Origin: Ginkgo biloba
Lineage: Eukaryota > Plantae > Ginkgophyta
Direction: 5' to 3'
Assembly (NCBI GenBank): GCA_024626585.2
Contig: JANKJI020000004.1
Location: 140,105,052-140,126,637 of the forward strand
Length of the DNA: 21,586 nucleotides
Shown here one piece after another: positions 2,594-21,586 of this stretch. The stretch's first letter is position 1. Every line of letters starts with the position of its first letter. The notes under the pieces were generated by a model, which was not told where the DNA came from, did no database searches, and was given only the letters and a program-made list of their open reading frames with translations. A program made the position numbers and the translations under genes.

Positions 2594-2605
2594 TTCCCTC
2601 CCCAT

Positions 2606-3900
2606 TAAATAAGCCTTTCCCTCAAGGCATTAACTCAGGAAATTATAGCACAAATTCTTCTAACTATCATGTGGATTCCTCTTTGAGTAGATCTATCCAT
2701 TTGATCTTGTATCATTAAATATACTTATTTCATAACTACTTTATCTAGACTTTTAGGACCTTCTCTGGCCTGATGATAGTTCACCCTTACTTATCTATTA
2801 GTGGTATGATGGTTTATGGTACAACTTGATCCACTAGTTATCATTTTACGATAGATACATGAAATATGTTATGTATATTACTTTTTACGGGTAGTTCTAA
2901 TTCGTACCCTACTTCACCAATTCTCCTTATGAATTGATAGGGCCCAATGTATTTTGGTTGGAGCTTGGCTTGAATTTTACTTTTTAATAATGTTTGCTTG
3001 TAAGGTTGTAAAAGTATGAACACCATATCACCTTCCTCAAACTTCTTTTGATTCTTTATTTTTATGCTTGTTGATTCATTTCGTTAGCTACTGTGTTTAG
3101 GTTGTCTTTTAGGTTTTGGATGATCTCCTACATTTCTTCAAGGGTGTTTTTTTCTATTGGACATTTGGACTCTCAGATGATTAGGTATAGGATGGATGGG
3201 GGGTCATACCCATATAATTATTTAAAGGAAGACATCCCTATTGATTTATGGTGGGTGGTTGTTCTACAAAATATAACCATTTTGTCCATTTCCCTTGCTT
3301 ATCCCCATTGTAAATGCACAAGTAGCCTTCTAAGAATTAATTTATGATTTTTGTTTAACCATCCATTTATGGGTAGTATGCTAAGCTCATGTTTAAGGTT
3401 ACTCCAACCGATTTAAATAATTCTTATAAGAAGTGGGTATTAAACTTGGAGTTACAATCATAAATAATTCTCTAGATTTTATCTAATTATGGGGTATATG
3501 GGGTATATTTACTTGAATGGTCGTGAAGTGGGTATATTTGGTAAGCCAATCAAAGACTATGAATATGACACTTTTTCCTTATGAATTTGGGAGGCATATG
3601 ATAAAATCCATAAAAATATCTTCCCACTTTCTATCTAGAATATTTAGAGGTTGTAGAAGATTGTGCAGTGCAGTGTTTCTCCCTTTTTCCTTTGACAAAT
3701 ATCACATTCTGAGACTTATTTTTCCACTTCCTTCATCATTCTAGAGCAAAAGAATAACTTTTAATTTTTTGGTAGGTCTTTTGAGCTCTAATGTGACTTG
3801 ATTCTAGTGTGGCATGTCCTTCTTGTATGACCTTAGATATCATAGGAAAATCTTTATTTAAGAATATATTGTCTTTATATAGAATGAGTCCATCCCTGGA
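2606..3900 (-). pseudogene. Integrase (core, GPY/F module) plus chromodomain remnant
   Basis: LLQPLNILDRKWEDIFMDFI (~3600-3660); KLQPKYIGPYQFIRRIGEVGYELELP..IHNIFHVS (ORF 2841..3026); KIKWIDLLKEEST*...FPEL chromodomain (~2620-2720). Confidence 0.88.
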
Positions 3901-7121: not shown

Positions 7122-7800
7122 CAAATGTATTACAAGTTATACAAAAATAATACAAATATAACAACATAGATGCAATGGAGATAATACGAAGATTAGAAAG
7201 TAAAATTTTAGACTATAAACAAATAATAGCACAACAGGCGATTTACTTGATTTTATCTATTACTATGCATCTCTTAAATGCATTTTCATAAACACTAGTC
7301 TAAGGGAGGAATAAGCATTTGTTTTAAGGCCAAATAAGTTGTTATAATTCTTAGAAGATTATTTTACTAGACATGAAATGCAAATTGAAATCTAAAATAT
7401 GTCTAGTTGAAAGNNNNNNNNNNNNNNNNNNNNNNNNNNNNNNNNNNNNNNNNNNNNNNNNNNNNNNNNNNNNNNNNTAATAAGAACACATTGAAATCCA
7501 TGCAAAAGAATACAAAAATTAAAAAATGAATGTCATAAGGTATGTGCATTATAATAAGCATAGAGATCCAAACAATTATTATAGGGAACACATATTATTA
7601 TATATTCCATTTAGAGAAGAAGATTATTTTACGAGGGAAAATGAACAAACATGGAAAGATGTATACATGTCCAATTCCAATTCTATAAATAAAAAATCTA
7701 AAATATTTTCATATGGAATAACTAATAATTTAGATAAATAATGGATAGAAATTAAAGATAGAAACATGGAGCACTTAAACATAAACAATGAAAATAATAT
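7122..7800 (+). mobile_element. Helitron-like (Helitron2/Helentron-type) RepHel pseudogene fragment, Rep-helicase linker region
   Basis: IDAMEIIRRLESKILDYKQIIAQQAIYLILSI...CIFINTSLREE*AFVLRP and VIRYVHYNKHRDPNNYYREHILLYIPFREE match the SAQEAxxxxLxLP / FINTSPPxER / IIRxxxxxxxDPENxYRExLxLxxPWR motifs. Confidence 0.75.
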
Positions 7801-12240: not shown

Positions 12241-13766
12241 CACTATTATATGATTACAACAACAATAACAAGTTTATAGTGTACTAATTACATTTTATAT
12301 TAGGTGATGGATCAGGACACTGACTTCACCTTAAGCATAGGCACATGCCAAATTTAGTAAATGATTGCAAGTAGTACACATGAGAGACATATAATATCTA
12401 ATTAATGTTATGATATTATGATGTGGACTTGGTCACATGAGGCGCATATGACTTGAGTTCCTCTTAATAAGTTGAAGAATTAATAATAATTAATAAATAA
12501 ATTATGGGAAATATAAGATAGGGAAAATGACTACTATCTTTATCTTACTAAGATAAGACTAATTGCATTTTACTATACTAAGAACAAACATATGCAAAAT
12601 CATATATTCAAATATAAGAACATGCATTTAGATACAAAGGCATGAATATGTATAAGAACTACAATAAAAGAGGGAATAACAACCCTTTTTGCAACCAAAA
12701 CCTTTTTTTTTTTTTTTTTTACCTTGTGAGAATAGCCACCACTTATTTGTGCATCCCCCTTGACAGGTGGCGACTTGGCCACAACACAAACAACCTACAG
12801 ACCAATTTTTGCAACAATATTGATTCCTATCTTGAGTCACCAACAAACCTGAATCATCAAACTTTAACTTGATCTGCAACACACTTAGCATTCTCTTAAG
12901 GCTTCAAGAGAATGTAACAAAAGTTATCCCCTGTAGACAATTGTGTGGGACTTTCCCACCGTGTGAGTATAGTCCTTGCATATTCATGCATCCACTCTGA
13001 CATGTGGCAACGCCTGGCACTACACGAACACCCTGCAATACTGCATCACCTTCTGGATCTGCCAATGGTTAGCCTTGATGCTTGCAACCCTTAAGTGAAA
13101 ATGTCTTGGAAGTCCTGCTCATCGGTTCTCCAACTCCCACAATGCAGTCCCTCTAACTACATAACATAACTCACATTCAAAGGCTAAAAACTGAACCAAC
13201 TCAAGCTTTGCAAATACAAGATAACCATAATTCTCATCTTATGTAAAACCATAAACAGGAACCTCTCATTCTCCTACTCAACCCTCTATTAACACAGACG
13301 GGATCTGAGTTATTTCATGCAATGAACACAAACTTTAACAATAGGCAGGACTTGACTCTTGGGATTGGTTACCCAAAGATCACACTCAAAATTTTAACTG
13401 ACAAGACACACAACACCACACTTAGGCAACTGTTCACACCACACTCAAAAAACACAGTTTGCCTATTACCATCTTGTCAAATAACTCAGTGTTGAGAGTT
13501 AGGCCTCTCAGCCACTTCAACCTCCTGTGAAGTATAGGGAATCATATACTCCCTCTTGATCTGAACTCCTTGTTGACGCTTGACTTCCTCCACGGGAACT
13601 CCTCCTTCATTGGGCACGACGAGGACCTTCTTCAAGCTCATACCATAGGGTTCCAATTTTACCTTTTCATGTGCCTTCTCTTTGCTTCTCGCAGTAGAAT
13701 CCATTTGATTCACCTTCTCCAATGGCTGCCGAACTTCACAACATATGCCCTGGGAGTAAGCCATTC

Positions 13767-13952
13767 CCACGTGTGTAACATGCATGCACATCCACTTGCA
13801 TGCAAACTGTTTTCTGAGGACAAAACTCCTCCACTGCCTGCCAAACTTTGACCATATGTGTAGTAGACGCCGCTCCGCCACATGTCACATGCATGCATAT
13901 TCATCTGCATGCAAACCGGTTTCTTCAATGGGTATCATACTTTGACCATATG
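13767..13952. repeat. Degenerate tandem duplication rich in RY (CATGCA) and G/E-box motifs
   Basis: Units 13767-13858 and 13878-13952 share CAC(G/A)TG..ACATGCATGCA..TGCATGCAAAC..ACTTTGACCATATG. Confidence 0.8.
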
Positions 13953-14304: not shown

Positions 14305-14410
14305 TGTTGANNNNNNNNNNNNNNNNNNNNNNNNNNNNNNNNNNNNNNNNNNNNNNNNNNNNNNNNNNNNNNNNNNNNNNNNNNNNNNNNNNNNNNNNNN
14401 NNNNNNNNNN

Positions 14411-15709
14411 GGTATCTACTAAAATATTGTGAGGAGACAAGGAAGTCTAGTAATATTTTGGAAAAATTTAATTCTACCTTCATAGTTTTGACTTTGAAAG
14501 AGAAGGGTCCTCTAACTTTTGACAAATTTAGACCTATCTTCCTTTGTAACATCCTTTAGAAAATTATTACAAAGTCGATGGCAAACAAACTCAAGTGAAT
14601 TTTGCCTGAGTTAATTTCAGAAGAGTAAGGATGGTTTGTTCAGGGAAAGCGTATACTAGATAGTATGGTCCTAGCCTAAGAGGCTCTCCACTCACCAAAT
14701 CTTAAAAAGGAAAAAAGGATGCTCATCAGGATGGACATGGCTAAAGCCTATGATCGTATTGATAGGAACTTTCTACTAAGGGTGCTAGAAGGATTTGGTT
14801 TCTACAAAGAATATAGGCAATGGATAAAAGGATGCATCTCGAATCCTTCTTTTATAATGTTAGTGAATGGAAGCCCAATAAGATTTTTCAAAAGTAGTAG
14901 AGGTATAAGGAAGGGTTTCCCATTATCCTAAAGTCTTTTCATCCTAGAAGTGGAGTCTCTTCGTAGACTTTTGGGAAATAAGGAAGAGAGAGGTCTTTGG
15001 GTTGGGGTTGATGTAATAGCAAATTACAAGCATATTTCTCATGTTTAATTCATGGATGATACAATGTTATTATGAAAACCATTAATTCAAAATGCTAACG
15101 TTTTTAGAGAGGCATTAATTACTTTATTAATAAGCTCAAGCGAAATGGTAAATGAGGATAAAAATTAGGTCTATTTTCTAAATACTTCATGGAGATTGCA
15201 CAATAGAGTATGCAGGGTATTCTGATTCCAGCATGGTAATTTCGATAATCCAATGAGATATCAAGGAGATCATTTATCTATATCTTTGTTAAAGTGGAAG
15301 ACTAGTCTTCTTTGATCTAGAAGTTCAAAAGAATATAGAAGGTTGGTCTTTGATTTGGTTAACCTTGGAAGGTAAAGCAAACGTAATTAAATCAATGTCT
15401 GCTTCCTTTTCGATATTTCTATATTCCTTTTTGGATGCCCCAAAAAGAATCATAGAGGATTTTGAGAAAATCATGAGATCCTTCCTATGGAACAGTAAAA
15501 AAGAAAGACAGAGAATTGATTTGGTCAGTTGGGATACTATCTGCAAACCCAAGGAAGAAGTTGGCATGGGCATTAGAAGGTTGGAGAACATGGCATTTCC
15601 CTTACGGGCAAAGTAGTCATGGAGATTAGGTACAGGATGCCCGACTCTTTGCAAGGACATCTTACTAAATAAATACTATGGGGGAATCTCAAAAGCTTCC
15701 TTTCTTTGA
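14411..15709 (+). pseudogene. L1 LINE ORF2 reverse transcriptase remnant, copy 1
   Basis: FRPIFLCN, DMAKAYDRID, SRGIRKGFPLS, SHV*FMDD, RSFLW..VSWDTICKPKEEVGMGIR. Confidence 0.92.
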
Positions 15710-15799: not shown

Positions 15800-18240
15800 G
15801 AGCTATGAATAGGTCCACAACATTAGGGGATTAGGAGGAAATTCTAGGGGGTGATTCTGAATTTTATCTTGGAAGGAAAAATGATTTTTTTGGTGATGTT
15901 AATATCCTTAGAAGAGCTAGAAGATAGGATCTCAAGAATGAAAGAGGATAAATAACTAGGGCCCTAGTGGGTTTTAGGTAAAAAATTTCAAGGCTTGTTG
16001 GGACATTCTCAAAGGGTATCTACTAAAATATTGTGATTCAAGGAAGTCTAGTAAGATTTTGGGAAAATTGAATTCTACGTTCATAGTTTTGAATTTGAAA
16101 GAGAAGGGTCCTCTAACTTTTAACAAATTTATACCTATCTCCCTTTGTAACGTCCTTTACAAAATTATTACAAAGTCGATGGAAAACAAACTCAAGCAAA
16201 TTTTTCCTGAGTTAATTTCAGAAGAGTAAGGATGGTTTTTTCAGGTAAAGCATATAGTAGATAATGTGGTCCTAGCCTAAGAGGCTCTTCACTCACCAAA
16301 TATTAAAAAGGAAAAAAGGATGCTCATCAAGATGGACATAGCTAAATCCTATGATCGCTTTGATAGGAACTTTCTACTAAGGGTGCTCGAAGGATTTGGT
16401 TTCTACAAAGAATAGAGGCAATGGATAGAAGGTTGAATCTCAAATCCTTCTTTCACAATGTTAGTGAATGGAAGCACAATAAGATTTTTCAAAAGTAGTA
16501 GAGGTATAAGGAAGGGTTTCCCATTATCCCAAAGTCTTTTCATCCTAGAAGTGGAGGCTCTTCGTAGACTTTTGGAAAATAAGGAAGAGAGACCTCTTGG
16601 GGTTGGGGTGGATGTAATAGTAAATTACAAGCATATATCTCATGTTTAATTCATATATGATACAATCCTATTGGGAAAACCATTAATACAAAATGCCAAA
16701 GTTTTTAGAGAGGCATGGAGGACTTTCTTAATAGGCTCAAGGGGAATGGTAAATGAGGATAAAAGTTAGGTCTATTTACTAAACACTTCATGGAGATTTC
16801 ACAATAGAATATGCAGGGTGTTCCGATTCTAGCGTGGTAACTTCGATAATCTAATGAGATATCTAGGAGATCATTTGTCTATATCTTTGTTAAAGTGGAA
16901 GGACTAGTCTTCTTTGATCTATAAGTTCAAAAAAAGATAGAAGGTTGGTATTCAATTTCGTTAAACTTGGAAGGTAAAGTAAACATAATTAAATTGCCTT
17001 CTTCCTTTTTGATATTTTGATATTCCTTTTTGGATGCCCTAAAAAGAATCATAGAGGATTTTAAGAAAATCATGAGATCCTTCCTATGGAACAGTAAAAA
17101 AGAAAGACAGAGAATTAATTTGTTCAGTTGGGATACTATCTGCAAACCCAAGGAAGAAGGTGGCATGGACGTTAGAAGGTTGGAGGATATGGCATTGCCC
17201 TTACGAGAAAAGTATGCATGGAGATTAGGTACAGGATGCCCGACTCTTTGGAAGGACATCTTACTAAATATATACTATGGGAGAATCTCAAAAGCTTCCT
17301 TTCTTTGACATTCATATCCTTAAAATAAGTGTTATGAGCTATGGAAAAATATTATTTAGGAGTTTCCCTTGATATACGATATCTTGGCTTGGGTTTGAGG
17401 ATATGGAAGTAGTATCCAATTTTTTATGAAGCCTTCTAACGCCTAACTCTGATAATTAAGGAGGTGGATATTGACCCTTTAAGTGACTTATTTTCGAGGA
17501 TTGGTCTATGGAGGTTAAGGGACTTTATCACGAGACAACCTCTAAAAATCCTTGGGGGTCTGGTATGGATGCACTATTGGAAAGGTTTCGACCTTCTATG
17601 GGAACTTATAATTTATTATGAGAGACTAGTGAAAATCTTGAATAGGAAAGAGCCCTTCCTATCAAAGGAGGAGGATAGATTGACATGGGTGGGAGCTCAA
17701 GGGTAGTGTGACTATTCGATTAAAGGAGGTTGGCAATTAGTGTCAAGGCAGAGAGGGGGGGTTAAGGACAAGAAGTGGCCATCCATATGGGACACTCTAA
17801 GTCTTCCAAAGCTTAACCCTTTTGTTTGGTTAACTTTTTATAATGAAGTCCTTACAAGGTATATTTTAAAATGAAGAGGTTTCAAGGGTCAATCATTTGC
17901 GTCCTTTGTGAAAGATAGGAGGAAAGAAAGGAAACAGATCTGGTTAACCAAGAAATAGAGTGTGCTCTTTTTTTATGGAGCCTCTAAAACCAATCTAGGA
18001 TAGGTAGGTTTGGTGGCCTCTTAGTAATCCCAAATCATAATAGCAAAATCACTTATTAGGAATGTCTAGGGATTTTATAGAACAATGTAGCAAAAGCTAA
18101 GGCCCTCCATAAGGCTCTGAGATTTTTGATGGAGAAGGAACCCTAGATGGATAGAATTTATGGAGATTCCCATCTAATTATCAATATGTGTTGCAAGATT
18201 AGTTGATTTGTAAGAAATCGATACTAGAAAATATAATAAA
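15800..18240 (+). pseudogene. L1 LINE ORF2 remnant, copy 2: RT, zf-RVT and RNase H
   Basis: LGPSGF..CWDILK, RT motifs as in copy 1, WDTLSLPKLNPFVWL..VLT..ICVLC (zf-RVT), then FYGASKTNLG, NNVAKAKAL, IYGDSHLIIN (RNase H, ~17970-18190). Confidence 0.92.
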
Positions 18241-18535
18241 AGAGATAAGANNNNNNNNNNNNNNNNNNNNNNNNNNNNNNNNNNNNNNNNNNNNNNNNNN
18301 NNNNNNNNNNNNNNNNNNNNNNNNNNNNNNNNNNNNNNNNNNNNNNNNNNGACAACAATGTTCACAACAATGCTGAGAATAATGAGATGAAGGTTGTTAA
18401 GCTTTTGTGATTTGGGAAGTTGATAATTTAAAATTGTACATGTTAGTATTCTATTGTATGCAACCGAATTAGTTGGCATGGATCAAAATCGATCAATTTG
18501 CATGGATCATAATCAAATCAAAGAATCTAAGATGT

Positions 18536-18751
18536 AATTAGTCAAACTCTATTTTGAAGACAACTCTACTAAACACATTAAATGCTATTAATAAAAATTT
18601 AGTTTTTATTTTTTAAATTTAGATTGCATTTGTTAGAATGGAAGAATTCAATATCTATTATTTGTAAGAGCAGCGAACAACAAGTAGTAGAATTAATCAA
18701 AGTCTCTTTTGAAGACAATTGTATCAAACACAATAAATGTTATTAATTAAA
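18536..18751. repeat. 61-bp dispersed direct repeat (18536-18596 and 18691-18751)
   Basis: aattaRtcaaa.tct.ttttgaagacaa...aaacaca.taaatgYtattaat; about 10 mismatches in 61. Confidence 0.8.
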
Positions 18752-19209
18752 AGACACCAACTATCACTTTGTAAAATATGTTCCCACCTTTTTAACATGA
18801 AGTTTATTTTTGGAATTTTTAAAATATTGAGAATAATTTGAGAAAAAAATAACAAAATATTCTATGACAAAAAATAAAATCGCACATAAAAATGGCTATG
18901 TTTTTCAAAAAATTATTGAATTATATTAACTTATTTTATCAACTTAAGTTACTAATTAATTTTATAAAAATAAAATGATATAAATGATTAACAAGTTTTG
19001 GATTAATTGGCAATCCATTGCTACAGTCCTTTGCCTGATACCAAGTACTAATAATATTTGCATAGTAAATTGTCAATTAAAGATATCAAATTAATTCCAT
19101 TGGAAATAATATTTACTTTAAAAGATAGAGAAATAATGATTAGAACAGAGCATTTTTTTAGGATAATAACAACATCTTTTGTTGTCCAAGAAATGAAATA
19201 TTTTGAATA

Positions 19210-19761
19210 TTAGTGATCTTGCACGTTAAAAGTGGGTCTAGATATTAATGTAGAGTGTAGAGATCCTATAGGTTGCATGTTATCATGCACGCTTGGCTGA
19301 GTCCACTTCTCAGTAAATACTTCCTTTGTCCTTCGGCATGATGGATAATTGGGATTACAATTTGCACCAGGAGTGGAGGTAATTACAAAATGATTATCAT
19401 TTCCTATAGGCTTCTTTTTATTTTTCACGCTTAACTGAACCCATTTCTTGGTAAATATTGCCTTTGCCCTTAGACATGATGGATAATTGGGGTTACAATT
19501 TGCAAGACCCTGTTCAATTGCAAAAGTATTATCATGCATACTTGACTGAGTCCACTTCTCAGTTAATACTTCCTTCACCTTAGATAATGGTGGGTATGAT
19601 TTATAATGGGGGTTACAATATGCAAGAGACTATTTGATCACAAAATTTTTATCATGTCAATAGGCATGTCGAGCAAAGACACAATGAAGATTGAGTAGAA
19701 ACCCAGTGAGAACAAAAAATATGATCGTTTTGGACTTGCATTGCATGATAGTAATCTCCAT
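19210..19761 (-). pseudogene. Secreted multi-repeat cysteine-containing peptide precursor with two in-frame stops
   Basis: Single frame: MEITIMQCKSKTIIFFVLTGFLLNLHCVFA-RHAY*HDKNFVIK*SLAYCNPHYKSYPPLSKVKEVLTEKWTQSSMHDNTFAIEQGLANCNPNYPSCLRAKAIFTKKWVQLSVKNKKKPIGNDNHFVITSTPGANCNPNYPSCRRTKEVFTEKWTQPSVHDNMQPIGSLHSTLISRPTFNVQDH*. Stops at 19657-19659 (TGA) and 19630-19632 (TAG). Confidence 0.8.
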
Positions 19762-19789
19762 AGACAAGATCTTGAGTCTACAATAATAC

Positions 19790-19846
19790 ATTGGACCTAG
19801 CACTCTTGAATGCCTACTTGGATATAGAGTGGCCTATCCAAATTGG
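19790..19846 (-). promoter_or_regulatory. Candidate core promoter of the peptide precursor gene
   Basis: CTATAT at 19822-19827 (~60 bp upstream of the ATG); CCAAT at 19842-19846 and 19790-19794. Confidence 0.3.
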
Positions 19847-21586
19847 CTTCTCTTTGATCTTTATGGNNNNNNNNNNNNNNNNNNNNNNNNNNNNNNNNNN
19901 NNNNNNNNNNNNNNNNNNNNNNNNNNNNNNNNNNNNNNNNNNNNNNNNNNNNNNNNNNNNNNNNNNTCATATTGTTTATTACTTTATTCATGTCCTTCAT
20001 CTCTTTCCCATCTTTACCATGTTGTTTTTATTTTGTTGTTTCATTTCGTTATCTATTTACAGTAATGAAAATGATGATTGATCTTTCCTCTTATAGCTCT
20101 AGTCACCTTCTTTATAATACCACATCAATCATTCAAGGTGTTCTAATTACTACCATAATTTGATAAATCAAGGACACTACACAATTAAAGAACACTAAAA
20201 ATGAAAGTACACAACATAAATATATAAGAATGGGCCTCACTACATAATCTNNNNNNNNNNNNNNNNNNNNNNNNNNNNNNNNNNNNNNNNTTCATTCCAT
20301 AATTTTTACAAGACTAACCAACCCTCCCCAAAATAAACTAAGGGTTTCAAAAATAATATTAGGATTAGAATGTTCTTAATAAAAAAAACATTAAGAAAAG
20401 GTCCTAGTTATATAGTTATTGAACTTGAGTAAGAAGAATAATTTTACATTTTATTGATATGGGATAGGTCAATTTAAGCCCATATTAATGGAATCCCAAC
20501 GAAATAATTTCTAGGAAAAATATATAAATGACAAGTTAGATATAGAATGAATAGATGTAATAAGAGATTATGTGTGCATCAAAGGCATGCATTTAATTAG
20601 ATATGATGCTAAGGATTATACGAAAATATAAGAATTTTTATACGAGGATCATAAATGATTAGATTACTATTATAAATTAATAAGTTTTTAAGAATACTTG
20701 TACTTTAGAAAAAAATTATCTTAAAATAGTCATGATGATAGTTTTTAATACTTAGTATTAAGTAATTTAGATGACTTTCAACAAAGAGTGTGGGAAAATT
20801 ATGAAGTATATTAAGAATTCACACCTAAAGAAAAGGACACATATTCATTCATATATTTTCTCAATAGCTTTGAAGTAGTAATTTTATAATAAGAGATATT
20901 CATTAAAGAAAATATACAATGTTAAATTGAGGAAAGTAAGGATCCACTAATAAAAAAGGTATCTCATGAAGAAGAATCAAAGTAGTCATCAGAGAAAAAA
21001 TATCATCAAGAAAAATACACTATTAAAGATTATAAGCATAAAGTAGAGTAAGAGGATATTAAAATTATAGAAAAGGATTGTATTGACATGAATGCACTAG
21101 AACATAAAGAAAAAAATAAATTTATTAGCGACAACTAACAAGAAAACTATTAAAAAATATATCATTTTATATGACAAGTATGAAATGAAGTAAGAGGCAA
21201 CTGACATCATAGATAATTAATATATTCACAATAGTAAGTATGAGCAAAATAAAAAAGGATGAGTTTATTGTTGATAGTTGACTTAATATCTTGACTAATA
21301 TAATAGAAAAGTAAATAAATTATCTAGATATGAAGGAAGGATTAAATAAAAACTAAGAATTATTTAGGATGTAACACAAGAAAAACCTCTATACATTCAT
21401 CTAATTAAAATAACCCTCATTATAATGGAAACTACACAACTAATAATATCAATCGTTCATGTTATAAAGATCATCATAAATACAAGAATTAATTCCCTTA
21501 GTCCATCCATATCAAAAAATATCCAATTACGTCAATTAATATAAAATAGTGGACTAATCCTAAGGACATGTCCTCACATTAAATGG

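Follow-up and report, generated by a model that had tools for sequence, protein, structure and literature searches.

A decayed gene in Ginkgo biloba points to a putative family of secreted precursors with repeated peptide cores

Introduction

Does a short stretch of Ginkgo biloba DNA, buried among decayed mobile elements, encode a secreted precursor of several small peptides, and is this gene still alive? The question was raised by a window of 21,586 nucleotides (the whole stretch of DNA analysed here). In this window, the open reading frame at 19210-19578 had been predicted, once extended upstream by 61 codons in the same frame, to be a hidden working gene that combines a signal peptide with three C-x6-C cores and may belong to an undescribed family. 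Few single-disulfide secreted peptides have been characterised in plants. If the family is real, it would provide a cheaply synthesised candidate ligand or defence peptide of 8-17 aa and show that polyprotein peptide precursors can arise independently. The surprise would be limited, as plants commonly have orphan peptide families confined to one lineage.

Results and Discussion

The frame has the layout of a secreted multi-core precursor

Translation of the minus strand, a detail that the original prediction had not given, from the ATG at 19761 to the TAA at 19210 yields a frame of 183 codons. This frame comprises a predicted signal peptide, three repeats of 40-46 aa and a C-terminal tail of 20 aa (Table 1). 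The proposed extension does reach an ATG at 19761, but it contains two in-frame stops, at which only the word read-through had hinted.

The signal peptide had been described by a KSK motif, a hydrophobic stretch and a VFA|R cleavage site, and simple heuristics agree with each of these elements. The n-region is basic (KSK), the h-region at 19693-19725 (IIFFVLTGFLL) has 11 residues with a mean Kyte-Doolittle value of 2.9, and VFA|R complies with the -3/-1 rule and is the likely cleavage site. When a crude signal-peptide filter was run over the 924 ATGs in the window, one other site passed. This second site, on the minus strand at about 21120-21210, consists of a hydrophobic stretch that meets a stop after about 37 codons and is probably a chance product of AT-rich sequence. 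Altogether, the frame joins an in-frame signal peptide to repeated conserved cores and variable spacers, as expected of a secreted multi-core precursor, and is cut by two stops in this copy.

Table 1. Features of the precursor frame and its upstream border. X1 and X2 are two public runs of the species.
Feature	Position	Strand	Remarks
Multi-copy relic, Ty3/gypsy aspartic-protease-like	about 19765-19866	-	A few bases upstream of the ATG, at the expected promoter/5'UTR; X1 depth 2553 vs base of ~78
Predicted signal peptide	19672-19761	-	30 aa from ATG 19761; 25 aa from alternative ATG 19746; heuristic prediction only
In-frame stop TGA, codon 35	19657-19659	-	Unchanged in X1 contig 19489-19714; Gly codon at the matching place in an X2 paralog contig (hand translation)
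In-frame stop TAG, codon 44	19630-19632	-	Gln codon at the matching place in repeat 2 and in an X2 paralog contig
Repeat 1, most decayed	19537-19656	-	Core AYCNPHYKSY at 19594-19623, second Cys missing; tail KEVLTEKWTQ
Repeat 2	19399-19536	-	Head HDNTFAIEQGL; C-x6-C core ANCNPNYPSC at 19474-19503; tail with conserved KW.Q
Repeat 3	19270-19398	-	Head DNHFVITSTPG; C-x6-C core ANCNPNYPSC at 19336-19365; tail RTKEVFTEKWTQ
C-terminal tail, non-repeat, and TAA stop	19210-19269	-	From translation

The three repeats of about 40-46 aa are present as described, with Cys-to-Cys spacings of 120 and 138 nt and a mean DNA identity of 75%. Cores 2 and 3 are identical and followed by basic residues (LRAK and RRTK, respectively), again as anticipated, and both hold a Tyr inside the Cys loop. 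The claim of three C-x6-C cores holds for these two, but not for core 1, which ends in Tyr and lacks the second Cys. In the tails, the W, K and Q residues are invariant across all three repeats. A single-sequence AlphaFold model reached a pLDDT of 38, too poor for a fold search; every tail carries a low-confidence helix in this model. Such values are what a propeptide would be expected to give, yet for a model built without an alignment they are uninformative.

Stop depletion and frame-keeping indels support a coding origin

Over the 183 codons, the gene frame contains 2 in-frame stops, compared with 10-19 in each of the other five frames. This depletion was matched in any frame by 5 of 2000 dinucleotide shuffles, a p-value that is optimistic because the repeats are not mutually independent. 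With the signal peptide and two repeats alone (repeat 3 and the tail omitted), 148 of 2000 shuffles matched; hence, the stop test is suggestive rather than strong. The indels between repeats (3, 9 and 27 nt) are all multiples of three and keep the frame.

Regarding selection, cores 2 and 3 differ by two synonymous and no non-synonymous changes, a marginal result over 10 codons (Fisher p=0.048). The 16 codons that follow the core look neutral between repeats 2 and 3 (dN/dS 0.93), and the nucleotide difference between core and tail gives p=0.07. No constraint is evident for core 1 (dN/dS 1.7); the tails compared with repeat 1 give 0.33-0.35, which is not significant. The strongest constraint falls on the core. 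These selection statistics are marginal and their numbers thin; together with the frame data they lend support to a coding origin.

Diverged paralogs reveal a gene family

Contigs of the two public runs, X1 and X2, were aligned to positions 17800-21586 of the window, and paralog snippets were translated by hand from the short contig letters. Both runs yielded contig pieces that differ from the gene and its 3' flank by 10-16%. Hence, paralogs do exist, and their presence in the same species makes this a gene family. The paralogs carry sense codons at both stop positions and have other repeat numbers. One contig reads ARHAYGH-DNTF across the first stop position, one reads IEQGLA across the second, one starts with CVSARHSCLH-DNTF, and one can be aligned with the entire signal peptide, as far as 19763. 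A jump of 120 nt at one joint corresponds to one repeat fewer, and a step back at another to one more. The spacers before the core read GLTSVPSEK-CNP and GLTSAPCPN-CNP in two paralogs and match that of repeat 3 (TSTPGAN-CNP); thus, the fuller unit seems to include a T-S-x-P stretch, placed four residues ahead of the first Cys. The position preceding the first Cys is occupied by N or Y, with K in a single paralog contig; in one paralog, a third Cys adjoins the core.

Among the X1 and X2 contig pieces we saw no complete intact paralog. One X1 paralog contig has two 1-nt deletions near 19627-19631, and some paralogs may therefore be broken too. In X2, paralog contigs reach a depth of 126-138 over a base of 4-5, and these high-depth contigs take in flanking DNA. 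If X2 represents ordinary whole-genome data, this depth would correspond to about 25-30 near-identical copies, and enrichment would look alike.

These data bear on the idea that the locus is not a host peptide gene at all, but a decayed tandem repeat or transposon-borne DNA with only the semblance of a signal peptide and a frame left open by chance. The transposon graveyard around it, the multi-copy retroelement relic that directly adjoins it, the lack of homologues and RNA in our searches (see below), the extension of high-depth paralog contigs into flanking DNA and the chance signal-like stretch elsewhere in this AT-rich window all fit such an origin. Against it stand the frame-keeping indels, a stop depletion confined to one frame, the purely synonymous changes between cores 2 and 3, paralogs that have sense codons where this copy has its lesions and whose spacer variants stay in frame, and a signal peptide that lies in frame exactly where paralog homology starts. 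We consider a non-coding mimic unlikely.

This copy is most likely a pseudogene

Both stops, nine codons apart, fall after the signal peptide and ahead of the first core, and each is a single-base change relative to repeat 2 or to the paralogs. An error-free X1 contig spans them, although this confirmation is not independent because X1 may be the source of the assembly. Just upstream of the ATG lies the multi-copy relic (Table 1). Since a paralog contig ceases to match at 19763, this copy appears to have lost its native 5' region. Hand translation of loose ends from related relic copies gives ...IMDLGSSVNVMP, including a DLGSSVNVMP stretch that we take to be a Ty3/gypsy aspartic-protease site; Pfam returned no match for the window's own decayed relic pieces. 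As to expression, one polyA run, 6% of which was read, gave no reads matching the gene even at an identity of 82%, and there was no RNA run among the recorded holders of the gene sequence. Tissue-specific expression of the paralogs may be compatible with the absence of reads in the polyA run. The two stops and the retrotransposon-like relic against the ATG make this copy most likely a pseudogene. The working gene first proposed therefore finds no support, in view of the stops, the relic at the start codon and the lack of RNA reads.

It has to be considered whether this copy could still function through stop-codon read-through, an assembly error or a downstream start. The first stop is a TGA followed by C, a mildly leaky context, and 139 codons are open downstream. 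However, two stops nine codons apart, both present in the error-free contig of X1 (possibly the source of the assembly), and an upstream region that looks replaced by a transposon relic make a functional copy highly improbable. A start at the ATG at 19539 was rejected: this codon is GTG in the paralogs, and no signal peptide would follow. Along with the non-coding mimic, a functional copy fits the data worst.

A separate observation comes from a small run labelled as another organism (RNA or DNA uncertain), which holds one 161-nt contig identical to 19304-19464 (repeats 2-3) at a depth of 5.5. The flanks of the gene are absent from this run and its other contigs are unrelated; the contig could represent host carry-over or a transcript.

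Searches return no homologue

The stop-free pieces flanking the stops served as separate queries, and the stops themselves were written as X in scripted analyses. Neither piece had a true Pfam match, only sub-threshold PH and glutaredoxin hits. A word-index search of a 5.8-billion index, queried with the 139 aa piece as well as an alignment of the repeats, found no homologue. A common plant LINE fragment of the window, used as a control, also went without a match, so the blanks of this index are weak. By phmmer, run without a positive control over 1.84 billion protein representatives, no true homologue was found; the three matches were rejected as long repetitive proteins with summed weak stretches, two of them with unrelated bacterial-type domains. 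PDB sequences, an exact cluster look-up and a search of metagenome contigs by protein gave no match, and two ESM Atlas queries scored at best 0.81 and 0.78, inside the shuffle range. Five metagenome matches to the core DNA pattern were also rejected: four lie in frames full of stops, and the fifth belongs to an unrelated protein rich in Cys. The core sequence was not found in a full-text literature search.

A pattern scan of the precursor detected none of the CLE, CEP, PIP, IDA, PSY, RGF, CTNIP, burpitide or PawS motifs, which bears out the view that the core fits none of the CLE, CEP, BURP-associated or PawS-type consensus motifs. The idea of an undescribed family stands in so far as paralogs exist and no homologue emerged from the databases; it is provisional, as the sets searched hold no plant genome or transcriptome collections. 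Judged from sequence, we provisionally regard the family as undescribed and lineage-restricted.

A model for intact family members

The explanation that we favour, with a probability of roughly 0.55, is that this locus is a dead member of a multi-copy, lineage-restricted family whose secreted precursors carry several cores and give rise to single-disulfide peptides. Intact members, if expressed, would encode an intronless preproprotein with a signal peptide, a variable number of repeats of about 40-46 aa and a short tail. Each repeat unit would comprise a head (HDNxFxIEQGL), in some cases a T-S-x-P stretch, an eight-residue loop (C-N-P-x-Y-x-S-C), a basic x-R-x-K site and a KW.Q spacer. The precursor would be secreted through the ER, with one disulfide formed between the two Cys of each core. 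Apoplastic proteases would then free the loop by cutting at an acidic or Asn position within the head and, on the other side, at the basic site that follows the loop, so that each precursor would yield several disulfide-looped peptides of about 10-20 aa. The computed monoisotopic mass of the oxidised core CNPNYPSC is 894.30, or 1522.58 with the seven residues that precede it in repeat 3. These peptides may act as extracellular signals or defence peptides, by analogy with SCREW/CTNIP and DEP, which act via LRR-RLK XI receptors.

SCREW/CTNIP and DEP, single-disulfide phytocytokines that are ligands of NUT/HSL3 and DEPR (PMC13261660, PMC9191895), would be the closest working model. They need their loop to bind NUT/HSL3-type receptors. 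Gymnosperms are the first plants in which the NUT receptor superclade appears, and NUT-clade receptors include a gymnosperm group (PMC13261660). The precursor described here resembles theirs in its predicted secretion, in the two Cys predicted to close one loop, in the Asn-Pro within this loop and in the S-x-P stretch just before the first Cys (in repeat 3 and the paralogs). Unlike in CTNIP, the two Cys are 7 rather than 9-11 residues apart (PMC9191895). In addition, the loop starts with CNP instead of CTNIP/CTNNP, only T-S-x-P is found upstream in place of PVPxSGP, several cores each followed by a long spacer replace a single C-terminal peptide, and no sequence homology was detected. Given these differences in Cys spacing, motif and layout, the peptides may work alike without belonging to the same family. 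Receptor signalling in particular is less certain than the release of disulfide peptides by this family. More tentatively still, intact paralogs might constitute an undescribed, possibly recently amplified, multi-core single-disulfide signalling family in a non-flowering plant lineage. They would then be the first polyprotein SCREW/DEP-like ligands and candidates for gymnosperm NUT-superclade receptors. Since the locus itself is a dead copy, its value lies in pointing to these paralogs.

The main rival accepts the same family and the same dead copy, but gives the product a direct part in defence, storage or reproductive secretion, as an antimicrobial, protease-inhibitor-like or structural protein rather than as a receptor ligand. 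The repeats would be released or kept together, and the KW.Q spacer would be part of the mature domain. A possibly high copy number, as the X2 depths may indicate, and multi-core precursors would suit an abundant product. The invariant W, K and Q of the tail, its low though not significant dN/dS relative to repeat 1 and the low-confidence helix modelled on every tail are also in line with such a role. However, constraint peaks on the core, and this core is neutral and, by pattern scan, free of a Bowman-Birk/SFTI motif. Moreover, the idea that the tails form amphipathic helices was rejected (hydrophobic moment 0.15-0.19, shuffle p 0.68-0.84). Next to the release of single-disulfide peptides, we thus regard such a direct part in defence or storage as possible but improbable.

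Comparison with other peptide precursors

Cyclisation of the cores had also been envisaged, so that the frame would encode a RiPP precursor with Tyr cross-links made by a split BURP cyclase or with head-to-tail ligation by AEP. A GL dipeptide, typical of cyclotide and PDP N-termini, precedes the core. The precursor further recalls split burpitide precursors (PF10950/ST proteins), which also have a signal peptide, repeated recognition and core units, a conserved Tyr and a multigene family (PMC10107690), and its YPS recalls the selanine core VLFYPSY (PMC11253845). In contrast to the burpitide precursors, there is no PF10950 match, Ax6YWx7PMP leader or F.PRP motif here, a Cys pair is present, and the C-x6-C core carries its Tyr inside the loop and not at its C-terminus. 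Inspection of stop-free stretches in the 21.6 kb window, ten of which were scanned in Pfam, revealed no gene for a BURP protein, AEP or subtilase; in a large genome, such a neighbour could lie outside the window. Tyr cross-linking by a BURP-type enzyme is therefore unsupported. Cleavage by AEP at N|C is doubtful as well, since the residue before the first Cys varies. PawS-derived peptides, including SFTI-1, do have a single disulfide, and spacer and core units are repeated in multi-core cyclotide precursors (PMC11253845). Unlike these, the present precursor has no Gly...Asp boundaries, albumin domain, six-Cys knot or Asx closing the core, and the AEP sites of such peptides (N|G at the start, D/N at the end) are absent. 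Altogether, we regard cyclised cores as unlikely and retain the reading of a dead precursor of single-disulfide peptides.

The combination of a signal peptide with tandem peptide domains in one intronless frame is shared with multi-domain CEP and CLE precursors. Neither the 15 aa CEP domain (xFRPTxPGxSPGxGH) nor, by pattern scan, the 12-13 aa CLE motif (RxxPxGPxPxHH/N) is present, and the core described here contains Cys. In a survey of CEP genes, those of gymnosperms had one domain each (PMC4197245, also the source of the CEP domain and of the multi-domain layout). The beta-Ginkgotides are likewise gymnosperm-restricted secreted Cys peptides whose pattern includes a C-x6-C loop (PMC5522442). 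Their six Cys (Cx2CCx6Cx2CC), YLDE.G loop, single core and precursor of about 80 aa have no counterpart here.

The surrounding window

The rest of the window consists of decayed LINE, gypsy-like and Helitron-like DNA, with a CpG observed/expected ratio of 0.24. Two closely similar relics of a decayed LINE ORF2 (reverse transcriptase) lie in tandem on the plus strand at 14400-15700 and 15980-17870, and an RVT_1 Pfam match was obtained at 14680-14928 (E=2e-8). On the same strand, 7526-7741 holds a fragment without a Pfam match that resembles the ORF of a Helitron/PIF1-type helicase. A gypsy-like fragment of the integrase-end/chromodomain-adjacent kind (...YIGPYQFIRRIGEVGYELELP...) lies at about 2600-3800 of the minus strand. 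At 13480-13950, a GC-richer island (47%) has several open frames with HMH/MHV-type internal repeats and no Pfam match.

The assembly around the gene is interrupted by N gaps. The one at 18251-18350, within 17800-19627, possibly marks a misjoin of two paralogous units. In X2, 17800-18250 exactly matches a contig of depth 115, whereas to the right of the gap contigs of depth 126-138 are about 10% diverged and the exactly matching contig has a depth of about 5. X2 also holds a contig of depth 4.6 that is a 15% diverged version of 17966-18109. Finally, an X1 contig joins both sides of the gaps at 19867-19966 and 20251-20290 with no letters between, and these gaps may therefore be empty.
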